Source: Octopus sinensis
Taxonomy: Eukaryota
Assembly (NCBI RefSeq): GCF_006345805.1
Contig: NC_043003.1
Coordinates: 496,001-560,000 of the forward strand
Direction: 5' to 3'
Length of the DNA stretch: 64,000 nt
How positions within the stretch are numbered: position 1 is the first letter of the stretch; every line of letters begins with the position of its first letter. Under the pieces are notes generated by a model that was not told where the DNA came from, did no database searches, and saw only the letters and a program-made list of their open reading frames with translations. Both the position numbers and the translations under genes were made by a program. This document shows, one piece after another, positions 1,878 to 62,278 of the stretch.

Positions 1878-1924
1878 GTCTCTGATGAAGGGATATATCA
1901 GATATCCCGAAACAGCTGTAAGAC
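1878..1924 (+). ncRNA. Intact minimal type-I hammerhead ribozyme motif (Penelope/retrozyme type)
   Basis: Helix I GTCT(1878-81)/AGAC(1921-24); core CTGATGA(1882-88)+A; helix II GGGATAT/ATATCCC (7 bp, loop ATCAG); GAA(1909-11); palindromic helix III ACAGCTGT; GUA triplet, predicted cut after 1920. Confidence 0.9.
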
Positions 1925-4254
1925 TTTTCTTGATAAATGTTCTGGAAACTATTGACAGCCTTGGATTTTTATCTCATTCTGTCAATTATATACATATATA
2001 TATATACATATATATATATATATATAATATATATATATATATATTATATATTATATATATATATATATATACATACATACACATTTAATGTCTGTTGTCC
2101 CATGGTGGCATGGGTTGGACAGTTTGTACGGGCTGGCATGCTGGATGGCTGCACCAGACTGCAGTCTGATTTGGCATGGTTTTCTAGGGTGTATGCCCTT
2201 CCTAACACCAACCACTCCAAGAGTGTAACGGGTGGTTTTACATGCCACCGGCATGGGTGCCATTTATGTGACTCTGGGGCGCAGTTATGTGCCACCAGCA
2301 TGGGTGCCAATTTGTGTGACACCAGTATCTGCCACGACTGAGATTTTGCTCAGTTTGATGGGTCTTCTTCTCAAGCATGACATAGTGCCAAGAGTTGTAA
2401 ACTATTTAAAGAACCCTCTGGTTTTCCAAAGTCTCACATTCCTGTTCCAGTGTATGTTGATTCTATCCTACCACACGAAATGCTCAGCTAAGTTTAAGAA
2501 ATTCACACACACACACACACACATATATATATCATCATCATTATCATCATCATCATCATCATCGTTTAACGTTCGCTTTCCATGCTAGCATGGGTTGGAC
2601 GATTTTGACTGAGGGCTGGCAAACCAGATGGCTGCACCAGGCTCCAATCTTGATTTGGCAGAGTTTCTACAGCTGGATGCGCCTTCCTAACACCAACCGC
2701 TCCGAGAGTGTAGTGGGTGCTTTTTACGTGCCACCTGCATGGGGCCCAGTCAGGTGGTACTGGCAATGACCTCACTTGAATCTTTTTACATATGCCACCA
2801 GCACAGGTGCCAATAAGGCAACGTTGGCATCTGTGCCTCCTCTCCAAGAGAGTGAGAGGGAATGTATATATATATATATATATATATATGATGATGATGA
2901 TGATGATAATGATGAATATGTATATATATAAGTATACATATATAAAGAGATATATTTATTTACATGTAGCAGTAATATTTGTCTCTGTCTAAATAGAGAC
3001 TAAATTATAGTCCTAGAAGCCAGAGAAAATAATCAATTTTGTTGTTTCTAATCCTCCTCCTCCTCCGTAAATTTGTAGCCTTGGGCTGGTATCAGAAACC
3101 ATCATCATTATCTGTGGCATGTGCATAGCAAAATCGGCGGAGCATCTCATAAAATGCCTTGTGGCTCTTTCGATAAACAATTTTACATTCTTGTAAGTGA
3201 ATTTAGCATCATTAATTCAGGTTTAAGACGAGAAGTAATTTTGTCTTGGCATCGTTTCATCCTGCCAAGATTTCTATTTCATAAATGAAGAAGTCTATTT
3301 AATAATTAAACAGGTGTGGCTGTGTGGTTAAGAAGCTTGCTTTACAACCGTGCGGTTTTTAGGTTCCGTCCCACTGCATGGCGCTTTGGGCAAGTGTCTT
3401 CTAGTATAGCGCTGGGCTAGCCAGTTACTTGTCAGTAAATTTGGTAGATGGAGACTATGTGGAATCCCATGTGTGTGTGTGGATTTGGGTGTGTGTGTTG
3501 GTGTTTGTCCCTCACTCCTACTTGACAACCAATGCTGGTTTATTTATGTCCCTGTGACTTAGCCGTTTGGCAAAAGGGACCAATAGAATAAGTACCAGAT
3601 ATAGAAAATAAATACTCAGTGCAGTTTGTTTGACTAAAGCCACTACAGTGGTGCACCAGCATGGCCACAGTCCAATGGTCGAAACAAAACCAAAGCTAAA
3701 GTCTCATGCATATTAAGCAGCCCAACAGCATCCATCTTGGATCTGCTTTGGTTTTCAACCCTCCCAGATTGAAATAAGCACCCATCATGATATCGCAGAA
3801 GGTGACGCTCCAGCATGACCACGGGCCAATGAGTAAATCTAGTAAAAGAATAGAAGAATCCTAATAATGGTAATGAGTGGTGATGCCATGTGAAAAGCAG
3901 TGGTGATGGCGCCTTGCGAAAAAGCACCCACCCCACTCAGTAAATTGGTTGATGTTAGGAAGGGCAGCTACCCCTAGAAACCATGCCAAAACATAGAATG
4001 GAAACGAATGATGATGATGATGATGGTGGTGGTGGTGATTATGATGGTGATGAGGATTATGATGATGATGATGATGATGTCCAATTTAAATGCTAAAAGG
4101 TTAATTTACAAGTTTCCTTTTTGTCTTTGTTTTTTTTTTTACCTCACTTATTTTTCTTTGATTAACAATTTTAACTATATTTTATCCCCATTATTTTGTT
4201 TTTCTATTTTTTTTCTTTCTCACATGAATTTTTGCATGAAATTTGCATGAACAG

Positions 4255-4350
4255 CTCAAACAGAAATGGTTTGGTTAACTCATCTGTCAGAGAGGAACAA
4301 ATCGAAACGCCACAGAAACGTCAACTGAAAGCGAATCGGTTAAGCAGGCT
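4255..4350 (+). CDS. Internal coding exon A (96 nt, phase 2-2) of the ER/K-rich host gene: (S)SNRNGLVNSSVREEQIETPQKRQLKANRLSR(L)
   Basis: T-rich tract then AACAG acceptor (AG 4253-4254) and CT|GTATGT donor at 4351. Only one frame is open. The terminal CT plus the first T of exon B gives CTT (Leu). Less compositionally diagnostic than the other exons. Confidence 0.6.
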
Positions 4351-4881
4351 GTATGTGAATGTAATGTTTTTATTAACCATTTTCTCTACCTTCCTTTTAA
4401 TCCATATTATTGCACAAAAACAAACCAATCTCAAAAACGTGTTTGCTTTCTCAGAAAATCTGTGACTTTTTGATTGTTTAAAGCAGCACTTCTTAAACGT
4501 TTTTCACTCATGACCCCATTTTTCAATTAGATTTTTCGTGACCCCAGGTATTAAATATGTGTTTGGGAAATAATATATAAGCTGAAAAGGCTGCAAGCTG
4601 GCAGAAGCGTTAGCATGCCGGGTGAAATGCTTAGCGGTATTTCGCCCGTTGCTATGTTCTGAGTTCAAATTCTGCCAACGTCGACTTTGCCTTTCATCCT
4701 TTTGGGATTGATGAATTAAGTACTGGTTATGTACTGGGGTCAATCTAATTGACTAGCCCCATTCCTCCAAAGTTTCAGGCCTTGTGGCTTTAGTAGAAAA
4801 GATTCCATGACACAGATTGGGAAGCTCCCTTGTAGGTGGACAATATTCTTAAAGGAATAACATAAGTTTTATTATTTAGAG

Positions 4882-5465
4882 CAATGGTTCTCAACCCTAA
4901 TTCCCCTCGTATGGATCCCTTTGATTCGTATTTTACTCAAAGAGGGGTTCCTTACAGCCTTTTGATGTTTAAAAAATCCTATTATATTTTTATAATTAAA
5001 AATTATCAAGGCAGAGGAGTGGCTATGTGAGAAGAAGCTTGCTTCCCAACGACGTGGTTCTGGGTTCAGTCCCACTGCGTAGCACATTGAGCAAGTGTTG
5101 TCTACTGTAGCCTTGTGCCAAGCCAAGCCTTGTGAGTGGATTTGATAGGCAAAAACTGAAAGAAGCCCGTCGCATCTATATGTATGTATATATTTGTGTG
5201 TCTGTGTTTGTCCCCTCCACCATCACTTGACAACCGATGTTGGTGTGTTTACATCCCTGTAACTTAGCGGTCTGGCAGAAGAGACTGAAAGAATAAGTAC
5301 CAAGCTTACAAAGAATAAGTTCAGGGGTCGATTTTTTTCAACTAGAAAATGGTGCCCCAGCATGGCCGCAGTCAAATGACTGAAACAAGTATAACCAATT
5401 TCTTGGGGATAAATTTTTAACAGTGACCCCTTAAGGGTCATATGGACCCTGGCTGAGAACCACTG
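4882..5465. mobile_element. hAT/Charlie-type MITE interrupted by a SINE
   Basis: TIRs CAATGGTTCTCAACC / GGCTGAGAACCACTG; 8-bp flanks ATTTAGAG / TTTTAGTG; SINE at about 5015-5390 inside. Confidence 0.7.
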
Positions 5466-60600: not shown

Positions 60601-61626
60601 ATTTCTGATGATAGCACATCATTATTATTATTATTTTTCTTACTCTCATTTGCATTCTTATACTCTCATGTGGTGGTGGATGCAGCAGAACCAGCCATGG
60701 TTCTGCTGCACCCCCCCCCCCACCATTACCACCACCACCATCACCATCATTATCATCATCATCATCATCATCACCACCACCGCCACCACCACCACCACCA
60801 CCATCATCATAATCATCATCACCACCACCATCATCATCCCCACTACCATCATCATCCCCACCATCGTCTCCAACATCATCACCACCACCACAACCACTAC
60901 CATTGTTGCCTATAGCTGTTGGGAGAGACACGTCTCATATTCATGTTAGGGTCTTACATATTCAACACATGTGTTGAGAAACTTTAACTGTGAGTTTCAT
61001 TCAGAAAATCAACATAGTGTTTAAAATATATATATATATATATATATATAAAAGAAGCAACTAAGGGAGATAATTCTAATAGTAACAGCCAATTGACATT
61101 TTCAGAAAATAAAGATAGATATATCCATTAGTTTTGCCAGTTAGTTTTAAACCCAGGATCCATACCAATGTTGGACTGAGTCTTGTCTTTAAAACTAACT
61201 ATTGAAAATAATGGACATGTTTTGGTCTTATTAGTTCTTCACAGCAAAGCCATCATATATATTGTTGCTATTATGCAAAAGTGTCGTAAGTTCAAAATGT
61301 TGTCTTTTCAGAAAAGGAACAAAATAGTTTCACCATTCTATAGCAAAACTGTTGTACTACACCTTGACAAAATCTTGATATTTTGGCATCTGAAGCAACT
61401 GGAGATACGATAGTTTGACCAAAAGAACTGGGTATGGCAAGGAAAAATAAATATTTAAGAAAATGCATTTGGCGACATTTGACATAAGACAGTTTAACAT
61501 AATAGTAACAATATATATAAATATATATATACATATATATATATATATGTATGTATGTATGTATGTATGTATGTATGTATGTATGTATGTATGTATGTAT
61601 GTATGTATGTATGTATGTATATATAT

Positions 61627-61985
61627 GAGTGGCTGTGTGGTAAGTAGCTTGCTAACCAACCACATGGTTCCGGGTTCAGTCCCACTGCGTGGCATCTTGG
61701 GCAAGTGTCGTCTGCTATAGCCCCGGGCCGACCAATGCCTTGTGAGTGGATTTGGTAGATGGAAACTGAAAGAAGCCTGTCGTATATATGTATATATATA
61801 TATATATATATATATATGTGTGTGTGTGTATGTGTGTGTGTTTGTTCCCCTAGCATTGCTTGACAACCGATGCTGGTGTGTTTACGTCCCCGTCACTTAG
61901 CGGTTCGGCAAAAAGAGACCGATAGAATAAGTACTGGGCTTACAAAAGAATAAGTCCCGGGGTCGATCTGCTCGACTAAAGGCGA
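61627..61985 (+). mobile_element. tRNA-derived SINE family A. Other copies: about 3312-3690 +, 5015-5390 +, 23385-23725 -, 43022-43215 +, 52992-53140 +, 54170-54545 +
   Basis: A-box TGGCTGTGTGGT, B-box-like GGGTTCAGTCCC, core CTTGGGCAAGTGTC, internal (TA)/(GT) tract and shared tail GAATAAGTAC..CCAGCATGGCC. Confidence 0.85.
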
Positions 61986-62228
61986 GTTAAAAAAAACAAG
62001 TAAAAAAAAACAAGTAAAAAAAAAATAGATAGATAGACAGACAGACAGACAGACAGACAGACAGACAGACAGACAGACAGACAGATAGATAGATAGATAG
62101 ATAGATAGATAGATAGATAGATAGATATATTAATGTTTGCTTTTATGTTATAATGAAAACAATTTTACATCAAACTGATGTACATTTGATGGAGCACAAA
62201 TTTATTATTCTTTAACAAGAATATTATT

Positions 62229-62278
62229 GACAGTAACTTCGAAGTTTTCACCTGCTAAGCCATCATCAGATATATGTC
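62229..62278 (-). ncRNA. Decayed HHR motif with long palindromic helix III
   Basis: Reverse complement CTGATGA-T-GGCTTAGCAGGT-GAA-AACTTCGAAGTT-A-CTGTC. Related copy at 10930-10970 (minus strand). Confidence 0.5.

Follow-up and report, generated by a model that had tools for sequence, protein, structure and literature searches.

The minimal type-I hammerhead motif known from Penelope-like elements (PLEs) is present in several dispersed repeat families of the AT-rich window, by which we mean the whole 64,000-nucleotide stretch of DNA analysed here. We think it highly probable that the window holds several unrelated families of short interspersed repeats, each carrying a metazoan minimal hammerhead ribozyme (min-HHR) of PLE type that would cleave as a dimer, and that the copies are relics of insertions. 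The presence of the motif, its excess over chance, the structure of the families and their pattern of decay are directly established; from the architecture and the insertion signatures we infer a link to PLEs, and dimeric cleavage of these motifs is likewise a reading of their design. The sighting is genuine yet ordinary, since hammerheads of this kind have been described before, and most copies are decayed.

A scripted scan of the window, using as descriptor the architecture proposed in an earlier note and composed after its author had viewed these sequences, matched the complete architecture five times, once each at 1878-1924, 50857-50902, and 53819-53861 and twice at a fourth locus, where 24703-24750 has an inverted twin at 24423-24470. 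The layout at these complete sites is helix I, N3-U4-G-A-N-N8-A, zero or one extra base, helix II, GAA, a palindrome beginning with A, H17, and helix I again. The full core (C3 U4 G5 A6 N7 G8 A9, G12 A13 A14, A15.1-U16.1, and H17 other than G) is found at 1878-1924 and 50857-50902, the same core with U3-A8 at 24703-24750 and 24423-24470, and with G3-C8 at 53819-53861, while it is broken in the motifs at 13492 (A12), 32612 and 50550 (both A12), and 42048/41914 (C4). With about 6–8 bp for helix II and about 4–5 bp for helix I taken as the measure of the min-HHR class, the pairs counted are 7/4 at 1882 and 6/5 at 50862, and, more weakly, 4–5/4 at 24707 and 5/3 at 53822. Helix III is replaced at the four loci by the palindromes ACAGCUGU, ACGU, ACAUGU, and AAUAUU.

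The intact minimal hammerhead found by the scan at 1878-1924 (+) is formed by helix I GUCU/AGAC, CUGAUGA, an extra A, a 7-bp helix II (GGGAUAU/AUAUCCC), GAA, the palindrome ACAGCUGU, and H17 = A1920, so that the predicted cleavage point lies between 1920 and 1921. In cofolding, the minimum free energy (MFE) structure of its homodimer is an exact double hammerhead, at −33.9 vs 2 × −13.1 kcal/mol. It lies in a unique segment of about 155 nt (E1882, 1836-1990, +), bordered on both sides by (TA)n microsatellite that Tandem Repeats Finder (TRF) resolves as arrays at 1468-1829 and 1987-2071, and BLAST found no further copy of 1836-1990 in the window. This solitary copy is the only one that looks competent for an active dimer, for which a second molecule would have to be supplied in trans.

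The second locus with the full core belongs to a family of four copies, here called D20, in which only the copy at 50686-50952 (+) holds an intact hammerhead (50857-50902: CUGAUGA, extra A, 6-bp helix II, ACGU, H17 = U50897, 5-bp helix I). By layout, this copy has a head that is tRNA-like by eye (GGCGTAGTGGTTAAGA...GTTCGATTCC), followed by (AAT/GAT)n and by the body that contains the hammerhead; ARAGORN called no tRNA in the head, and an Rfam search of 50660-50790 at E<=10 matched no tRNA model. The other three members of this repeat, with the motifs at 57145, 32612, and 50550, have decayed. Head-to-head with the intact copy lies that at 50450-50683 (−), whose relic at 50510-50555 shows G12->A and ACGU->ACAU; the copy at 56980-57235 (+) carries a relic at 57140-57185 with the palindrome (ACAU) and helix I broken, and the 5'-truncated copy at 32520-32712 (+) one at 32607-32652 with the core CUGAAGA and G12->A. 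Copies on the same strand are spaced by 18,250 and 6,283 nt, and the opposite-strand pair 50550/50862 lies 312 nt apart. Divergence is 9.0% in the hammerhead region vs 8.3% in the flanking body, and the changes that kill the core fall at CpG sites. Cofolding of the 50862 dimer gave an MFE structure other than the hammerhead, and an 18-mer from D20 had only chance-level matches in metagenome and viral scans.

An inverted pair, I1, provides the U3-A8 core. Its right arm (24625-24815, +) carries the hammerhead at 24703-24750 (UUGAUAA without extra base, G10.1-C11.1, GAA, ACAUGU, H17 = A24746) and its left arm (24358-24548, −) the same U3-A8 hammerhead at 24423-24470, for which cofolding formed helices II and III. 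The arms are 95% complementary across a spacer of 76 nt, the opposite-strand motifs 24466/24707 are 241 nt apart, and the whole pair is bordered by (TA)n. The G3-C8 candidate at 53819-53861 lies in the right arm (53819-53950, +) of another inverted pair, I6, and consists of GUGAACA, an extra G, helix II GUCGC/GCGAC, GAA, AAUAUU, H17 = U53858, and a helix I of just 3 bp; the MFE structure of its dimer in cofolding is not the hammerhead. The homologous motif of the left arm (53668-53799, −), at 53757-53799, has GUGAAGA, that is, an unpaired G3-G8, with AAUGUU and no helix I, and a third copy, 74% identical (20751-20853, +), has kept G3...C8 (GUGACCA) and GAA and lost helix II and the palindrome. 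The earlier note had proposed that the 3-8 pair covaries by family. One family does combine a U3-A8 core with every other hallmark, but the proposed covariation has only two non-canonical loci to draw on and one of them is weak: G3-C8 fits in one of the three copies of its family and has G3-G8 in its inverted twin. Among the C-G sites listed there, 1882 and 50862 are intact, while 57145 is a decayed copy of the latter and 13492 and 62269 are chance-like by motif. G3-C8 is known as a partly active double mutant only (PMC11167929), and no report of it as a natural hammerhead variant was found in the literature examined. This core, with its one fitting copy, and a putative SINE with a tRNA-like head that bears the motif are the two features that are possibly new.

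The closest known system is that of the metazoan PLE min-HHRs described by Cervera & de la Peña 2014 (PMC4209133), with an unpaired base after A9, a long helix II, a short helix I, a palindromic helix III, and many unrelated families per genome. The window motifs share with them the type-I topology, the CUGANGA...GAA core with H17, the unpaired base between A9 and G10.1, G10.1-C11.1, the long helix II, the helix I of 4–5 bp, the palindrome in place of helix III, the many unrelated consensus families, the predominance of solitary copies, the opposite-strand pairs 100–700 bp apart, and the U3-A8 covariant, seen here at 24707/24466. That work already contains the covariation to U3-A8, the extreme heterogeneity of families, the palindromic helix III, the opposite-strand pairs, and the additional base that follows A9, and none of these is therefore novel. 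The differences are that the window contains no PLE ORF, that one family has G3-C8, and that the U3-A8 copies of the window lack the extra base after A9. The earlier note had called for a search for linked PLE reverse transcriptase (RT) and GIY-YIG ORFs; neither kind was found in the window, where the longest ORF (173 aa) lies in simple repeats, none of the 10 ORFs scanned gave a Pfam match above cut-off, and no pLTR-ORF-pLTR unit was detected; coding fragments may still exist beyond those 10 ORFs. Since no RT plus GIY-YIG ORF with pLTRs was found, the repeats are filed only as bearing PLE-type ribozymes, and not as PLEs.

An inverted, 5'-truncated copy is typically part of a PLE insertion, and microsatellites are preferred targets (PMC8557442). 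Head-to-head pairs are formed in the window by 50450-50683/50686-50952, I1, and I6, and E1882, I1, and a copy at 10.9 kb each have (TA)n on either side, although microsatellites make up only 6.7% of the window. Inverted copies and microsatellite targets are suggestive as PLE-type signatures, non-exclusive to PLEs. We think that the motifs would belong to the class of min-HHRs carried by PLE pseudo-LTRs and by their thousands of solitary truncated derivatives. In this class the catalytic core is normal, helix II is long and contains G10.1-C11.1, helix I is short, and A9 is usually followed by one unpaired base. Because a palindrome stands instead of helix III, cleavage 3' of H17 should need two copies paired as a double hammerhead, as published work on the class suggests; dimer cleavage of min-HHRs is credited to Lünse et al. 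2017 in PMC6765202, and even in dimeric form the published PLE min-HHRs show poor cleavage in vitro (PMC4209133). The copies in the window would be insertion relics that lie within or next to microsatellites and are frequently arranged in inverted, head-to-head pairs; their decay proceeds at the neutral rate, and CpG transitions strike G12 and position 15.2. In an intronic read-through transcript, a ribozyme of an inverted pair would be hidden inside a long duplex; the energies of the duplexes burying the motif are −187 to −337 kcal/mol.

The alternative that AT-rich repeat DNA full of hairpins and palindromes has produced chance look-alikes, with no hammerhead at any site, is very improbable. 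In 300 block-wise dinucleotide shuffles, the relaxed pattern occurred on average 0.09 times per window and the strict one (CUGANGA) 0 times, vs 5 relaxed and 2 strict matches observed, and 315 decoy cores applied to the real sequence averaged 0.85 matches, the highest count, 5, being that of the true pattern itself. A scan tolerant to defects found 4 zero-defect matches vs 0.0 expected and 3 with one defect vs 0.15. The two-defect class (7 vs 2.8) and the three-defect class (63 matches, mostly microsatellite) are at noise level, which speaks for chance, as do a decoy architecture about ten times commoner in real sequence than in shuffles and the silence of Rfam: its hammerhead models (RF00163, RF00008, RF02275-7) had 0 window matches at gathering score, none was returned for 1862-1940 at E<=10, and at 50856 there was a misaligned match of 11.3 bits vs a threshold of 34. 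RF00163 (Hammerhead_1) shares the catalytic core and helix order with the window motifs, but its model assumes that helix III is a hairpin and that nothing is inserted after A9, and the window motifs score at most 11.3 bits vs 34. Against chance, moreover, the best loci show features that go beyond what was searched for. With N3, N4, and N8 unconstrained, U4 and a Watson-Crick 3-8 pair still appear in all five relaxed matches; G10.1-C11.1, which the scan did not require, is present in 12/12 tabulated instances (chance about 0.077 each), the equally unrequired C15.2-G16.2 is present at the best loci, and an unpaired base follows A9 in nine of the 12 (1882, the D20 copies, 53822, 53796, and 13492), being absent in the 24707/24466 family. 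Shuffles, decoys, and defect-class counts together rule out chance for the four best loci (1882, 50862, 24707/24466, and 53822), with counts above those of any shuffle or decoy, and the reality of the motif claimed for them is upheld. The unrelated flanks are also borne out, as there are several repeat families with flanks lacking BLAST similarity to one another. The tally of about 14 motifs in at least six families shrinks to four defect-free and three one-defect motifs, with about half of the list being decayed copies or chance-like.

Other genuine ribozyme carriers have to be weighed as well. It is quite unlikely that the repeats are metazoan non-LTR retrozymes (PMC7229834; 10.64898/2026.07.22.740005), that is, non-autonomous, non-coding tandem repeats of 170–400 nt that are transcribed, self-cleaved, and circularised to small circRNAs. 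The ribozyme is of the same type (type I, helix III being short and palindromic), an origin of these retrozymes from PLEs has been proposed, and a recent preprint (the second work cited) ties them to PLE pLTRs. However, retrozymes are head-to-tail arrays, whereas no tandem direct repeats bearing the motif exist in the window, where distances between same-strand D20 copies are 6.3 and 18 kb and the others are solitary or inverted, and introns are depleted of retrozymes according to the same preprint; the retrozyme reading of the earlier note is accordingly not borne out. We also regard as unlikely that SINEs or foldback/MITE-like elements not mobilised by PLEs gained the hammerhead independently, as proposed for schistosome elements of Sm-alpha type, with the inverted pairs being a foldback property at the DNA level. 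The tRNA-like head, microsatellite, and body of D20 resemble Sm-alpha/Sj-alpha, short SINE-like repeats with a promoter-like 5' part and then a hammerhead (PMC6765202), and other short-spacer inverted pairs without hammerhead occur in the window, e.g., 10573-10845. Nevertheless, the head went uncalled by either tRNA search, the Sm-alpha hammerhead is canonical with loop-loop contacts whereas the D20 motif is of the minimal, PLE-specific type, and both the inverted 5' copies and the choice of microsatellites as targets are on record for PLEs. Co-option by the host of intronic ribozymes that cleave pre-mRNA and regulate a host gene is barely credible. One intact solitary copy (1878-1924) with a strongly predicted dimer fold would agree with it, but divergence is equal inside and outside the motif, the motif is buried in duplex within the inverted pairs, and the search for a host gene, whose introns the earlier note had taken the motifs to occupy, found no exon or protein match in the window.

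Among the weaker sites, those at 42048/41914, 13492, and 62269 are candidates inseparable from chance on motif evidence, and to them, and to 44177-44224, the chance reading probably applies. The inverted pair at 41861-42101 (arms 41861-41966 and 41996-42101) holds UCGACAA motifs at 41880-41918 (−) and 42045-42081 (+), in which C4 replaces the conserved U4, with two to three defects per arm. A possible old relic at 62234-62269 (−) combines CUGAUGA with the palindrome AACUUCGAAGUU and has relatives at 10935-10970 (−) and 53141-53176 (+), with helices I and II intact in none. The single-copy possible relic at 13462-13495 (−) has CUGAUGA, an extra A, GGAC/GUCC, and then AAA-AUGU, so that AAA stands instead of GAA and the palindrome is broken; it falls in the three-defect class. 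Its AAA-AUGU is the expected product of CpG decay of CCGAAACGU.

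The architecture proposed in the earlier note was turned into a descriptor that requires, in this order, a helix I of ≥3 bp, the core N3 N4 G A N N8 A, 0–1 extra base, a helix II of ≥3 bp capped by a loop of 3–40 nt, GAA, a palindrome of even length (4–12 nt) that starts with A, H17 other than G, and the closing strand of helix I. In the window it finds five instances at four loci. CUGAUGA is the core of HH1882 (1878–1924, +) and of 50862 (50857–50902, +), UUGAUAA is that of 24707 and 24466 (24703–24750, +, and 24423–24470, −), which form the arms of a single inverted repeat, and GUGAACA that of 53822 (53819–53861, +). 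The motif is more frequent than in shuffled sequence, as the earlier note implied: against 5 relaxed matches, 300 shuffles preserving dinucleotides within 2-kb blocks gave a mean of 0.09, and 0 strict ones. Since hairpins and palindromes are naturally in excess and shuffling removes that excess, 315 decoy cores (the same fixed letters permuted, combined with GAA, AGA or AAG, with N3, N4 and N8 free) were also run on the real sequence, giving a mean of 0.85 and a maximum of 5, which is the true pattern itself. Besides, U4 and a Watson-Crick 3-8 pair are present in all five true matches even though neither is forced, the chance expectation per locus being ~0.33 and ~0.27, respectively. Shuffles, decoys and unforced hallmarks agree, and the five matches are not chance.

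A scan tolerating defects gave 4 zero-defect matches against 0.0 expected, 3 with one defect (32612, 53822 and 44182) against 0.15, 7 with two against 2.8, and 63 with three, mostly within microsatellites; therefore, past one defect the motif alone is uninformative. Among the 12 tabulated instances, all have G10.1-C11.1 (~0.077 each by chance) and 9 have an unpaired base after A9. A held-out covariance model that used no hammerhead but that of D20 (R1; D20 is the repeat family of 50862), searched with filters off, recovered just the four D20 copies and missed HH1882, being too family-specific. The earlier count of about 14 motifs in at least six families was generous: three families are solid and one is fair, whereas three others are uncertain. 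BLAST between the flanks of different families finds no similarity, in agreement with the unrelated flanks that had been claimed.

HH1882 is carried by a single-copy segment of ~155 nt (1836–1990) inserted in a (TA)n array. The D20 family has four copies, at 50686–50952 (+), 56980–57235 (+), 32520–32712 (+) and 50450–50683 (−), the last one head-to-head with the first, which holds the sole intact hammerhead. The other copies show CGAAAC changed to CAAAAC (G12 to A) and ACGU to ACAU, two changes that fall on CpG sites. Pairwise divergence within D20 is 9.0% in the 48-nt ribozyme versus 8.3% in the flanking body, a similarity indicating that the inserted copies are not under selection. The arms of the inverted repeat of 24707 and 24466 are 191 nt long and 95% complementary, with a 76-nt spacer and (TA)n flanks; the motif is whole in both (U3-A8, U4, G10.1-C11.1, GAAAC, ACAUGU and H17 = A), without the extra base after A9. 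The hammerhead 53822, with a helix I of 3 bp, occupies one arm of the inverted repeat I6 (132 nt); the opposite arm has GUGAAGA (G3-G8) and AAUGUU and lacks helix I. A third copy of this family at 20751 is 74% identical and has lost helix II, while G3...C8 is kept; since the pair occurs also in this divergent copy, G3-C8 is probably ancestral to the family, where one copy fits the descriptor, with its 3-bp helix I. The covariation of the 3-8 pair by family, claimed from the first reading, has two non-canonical loci behind it, of which one is weak.

These hammerheads are further members of a published class, the minimal type-I hammerhead ribozymes (min-HHR) of metazoan Penelope-like elements (PLEs), which have a helix II of 7–8 bp, a helix I of 4–5 bp, a conserved G10.1-C11.1 pair and palindromic positions 15.2-16.2 and loop 3 (Cervera & de la Peña 2014, PMC4209133). 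All the features that the earlier note had listed belong to this description. Their copies are mostly solitary, probably tied to truncated PLEs, and pairs occur on opposite strands 100–700 bp apart (PMC4209133), a range that includes the spacings of 241 nt (24466/24707) and 312 nt (50550/50862) in the window. Moreover, PLE insertions are accompanied by an inverted 5'-truncated copy and have a strong bias toward microsatellites (Craig et al. 2021, PMC8557442); the head-to-head pairs and (TA)n flanks of the window match these traits, with microsatellites making up just 6.7% of it. From ribozyme architecture and insertion signatures we infer a PLE origin. Neither the window ORFs (the longest has 173 aa and lies inside simple repeats) nor a Pfam scan of ten of them gave the linked reverse transcriptase or GIY-YIG remnant that the earlier note had proposed to look for. 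The same note had also considered retrozymes, a reading that we reject because the defining head-to-tail tandem copies are absent from the window.

In the mechanism drawn from the literature on the class, the palindrome would replace helix III, so that two copies must pair, forming a double hammerhead. In vitro cleavage of min-HHR is weak even as a dimer and may need a protein (PMC4209133, PMC6765202, PMC11167929). In silico, the minimum free energy structure (MFE) of the HH1882 homodimer is the exact double hammerhead, at −33.9 versus 2 × −13.1 kcal/mol, with an 8-bp intermolecular helix III, two intermolecular helices I and two intramolecular helices II. Helices II and III form in the predicted 24466 dimer, and 50862 and 53822 adopt other folds. 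In modelled read-through transcripts over the inverted pairs (MFEs of −278, −337 and −187 kcal/mol), the ribozyme nucleotides pair almost wholly with the antisense arm and none is paired within its motif; with the motif buried in this duplex, the inverted-pair copies are expected to be inactive in intronic RNA. Duplex burial and neutral decay together point to relics of past retrotransposition rather than ribozymes used by the host. The hammerhead is dispensable for PLE insertion in vitro (PMC11167929).

For a specialist there is no surprise, since the literature already covers the class with its dimer logic and heterogeneity, as well as the U3-A8 covariant, with ~1,300 matches in Schistosoma mansoni (PMC4209133); the interest is modest. 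A C3G/G8C double mutant partly restores cleavage, also in a PLE hammerhead (PMC11167929), and a literature search of limited coverage found no natural G3-C8 family. If confirmed both across the genome and experimentally, a natural G3-C8 core would widen the known natural sequence space of hammerheads to a modest but real degree. The window adds new family members and a clean small-scale view of post-insertion decay, which proceeds at the neutral rate with CpG changes at G12 and position 15.2. Animal genomes contain few ribozyme motifs that are more abundant than min-HHR. There is also a lesson for annotation, as the Rfam hammerhead models miss all of the window's hammerheads, and this class entirely: no family reaches the gathering score over the whole window, none of the best 150 matches listed at E ≤ 10 is a hammerhead (they are pseudo-miRNA, mostly on microsatellites), and small sub-windows gave no usable hammerhead match.

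The longer D20 copies share GGCGTAGTGGTTAAGA...GGGCTAC...GTTCGATTCC upstream of an (AAT/GAT)n tract (50686–50760, 56980–57052). By eye, this 5' head looks like that of a tRNA-derived SINE; neither ARAGORN nor Rfam calls it as a tRNA. A search of metagenomes and viral contigs with the D20 18-mer AGATGAGGACAAATATCC gave 20 loci, all chance matches of 18–36 nt. We think it rather unlikely, taken jointly, that naturally active cores exist here outside the published set (G3-C8 at 53819–53861, with 20751 sharing G3...C8, and perhaps the U3-C4-A8 of 42048/41914) and that D20 is a pol III tRNA-headed SINE with a captured PLE-type ribozyme module. Were D20 such an element, PLE machinery would mobilise SINEs in the Octopus sinensis genome.

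Other candidates are weaker. The inverted pair 42048/41914 (UCGACAA) has C4 where U4 is conserved and further defects in each arm. At 13492, CUGAUGA-A-GGAC/GUCC is followed by AAAAUGU, which would be the expected product of CpG decay of CCGAAACGU. The family of 62269, with relatives at 10935–10970 and 53141–53176, keeps CUGAUGA and a 12-nt palindrome at 62269, and neither helix I nor helix II is intact in any copy. All three are plausible relics, inseparable from chance in the window. The motif at 44177–44224 (UUGAGAA...GAA-G15.1) was rejected for its G at 15.1 and a helix II made mostly of G-U pairs; the surrounding palindromic region (44172–44260), a one-defect match with GUUGCAAC after GAA and a 5-bp helix I, is probably not a ribozyme. 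Also rejected were 11746 and 12453 (− strand), which lack GAA although CUGAUGA and a hairpin are present. They are identical segments 707 nt apart (TGTGT-CTGATGA-TATC...GATA-TCA-ATTAATTAAT), hammerhead-like in their 5' half, and reflect a local duplication rather than a ribozyme.

Several repeats accompany these loci. Nine copies of a SINE-like family share GTGGTTGGCATTAGGAAGGGCATCCAGCTGTAGAAAC, often followed by a (GAT)n tract (30747–30935, 31050–31278, 36556–36735, 42723–42912, 47877–48066, 48940–49012, 51231–51420, 52789–52861, 3935–4007); the hammerhead core is absent from them, and the 8-mer CAGCTGTA that they have in common with HH1882 is probably a coincidence. An inverted repeat at 10573–10702/10716–10845 (130-nt arms, 90% complementary, 13-nt spacer) has no hammerhead, so foldback pairs are common here with or without a ribozyme; its immediate neighbours are a (TA)n tract and one member of the 62269 family. 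A further conserved block of that family lies at 53606–53668, 10824–10881 and 62121–62170, and two of these three end directly at an inverted-repeat element (I6 or I11), which we read as suggesting nested insertions at one preferred site. The interspersed repeats D17 (4587–4774, 6515–6702, 28366–28553, 36012–36199) and D19 (16380–16492, 16614–16726, 33362–33474, 42177–42289, 59401–59513) are also present.

The 64-kb window as a whole looks like non-coding eukaryotic DNA, with ~34% G+C; short interspersed repeats abound in it, as do microsatellites of the (TA)n, (TG)n and (ATA)n types. ARAGORN called no tRNA genes in it, Pfam gave nothing above cut-off on ten ORFs, and an exact-protein look-up of the ORF at 42960–43385 found no record. 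Two short ORFs, 17206–17376 (+, …VPVIAGSLGTVSNGTKRNIKEIGIE…) and 41605–41778 (+, …LKDIGIETCIV…), look on visual inspection like the C-terminal part of ORFs from invertebrate non-LTR retrotransposons; neither has a Pfam match above cut-off, and a homology search with the former gave no candidates. No host gene emerged from these ORF searches. Large compound (TA)n/(TG)n blocks (250–2090, 25490–25870, 45290–45960, 56280–56470) give rise to numerous artefactual "miRNA" matches below the Rfam threshold (mir-297, mir-466, mir-5014). A tandem array of ~8 copies of a 38-nt unit, 66–91% identical, occupies 18715–19018.
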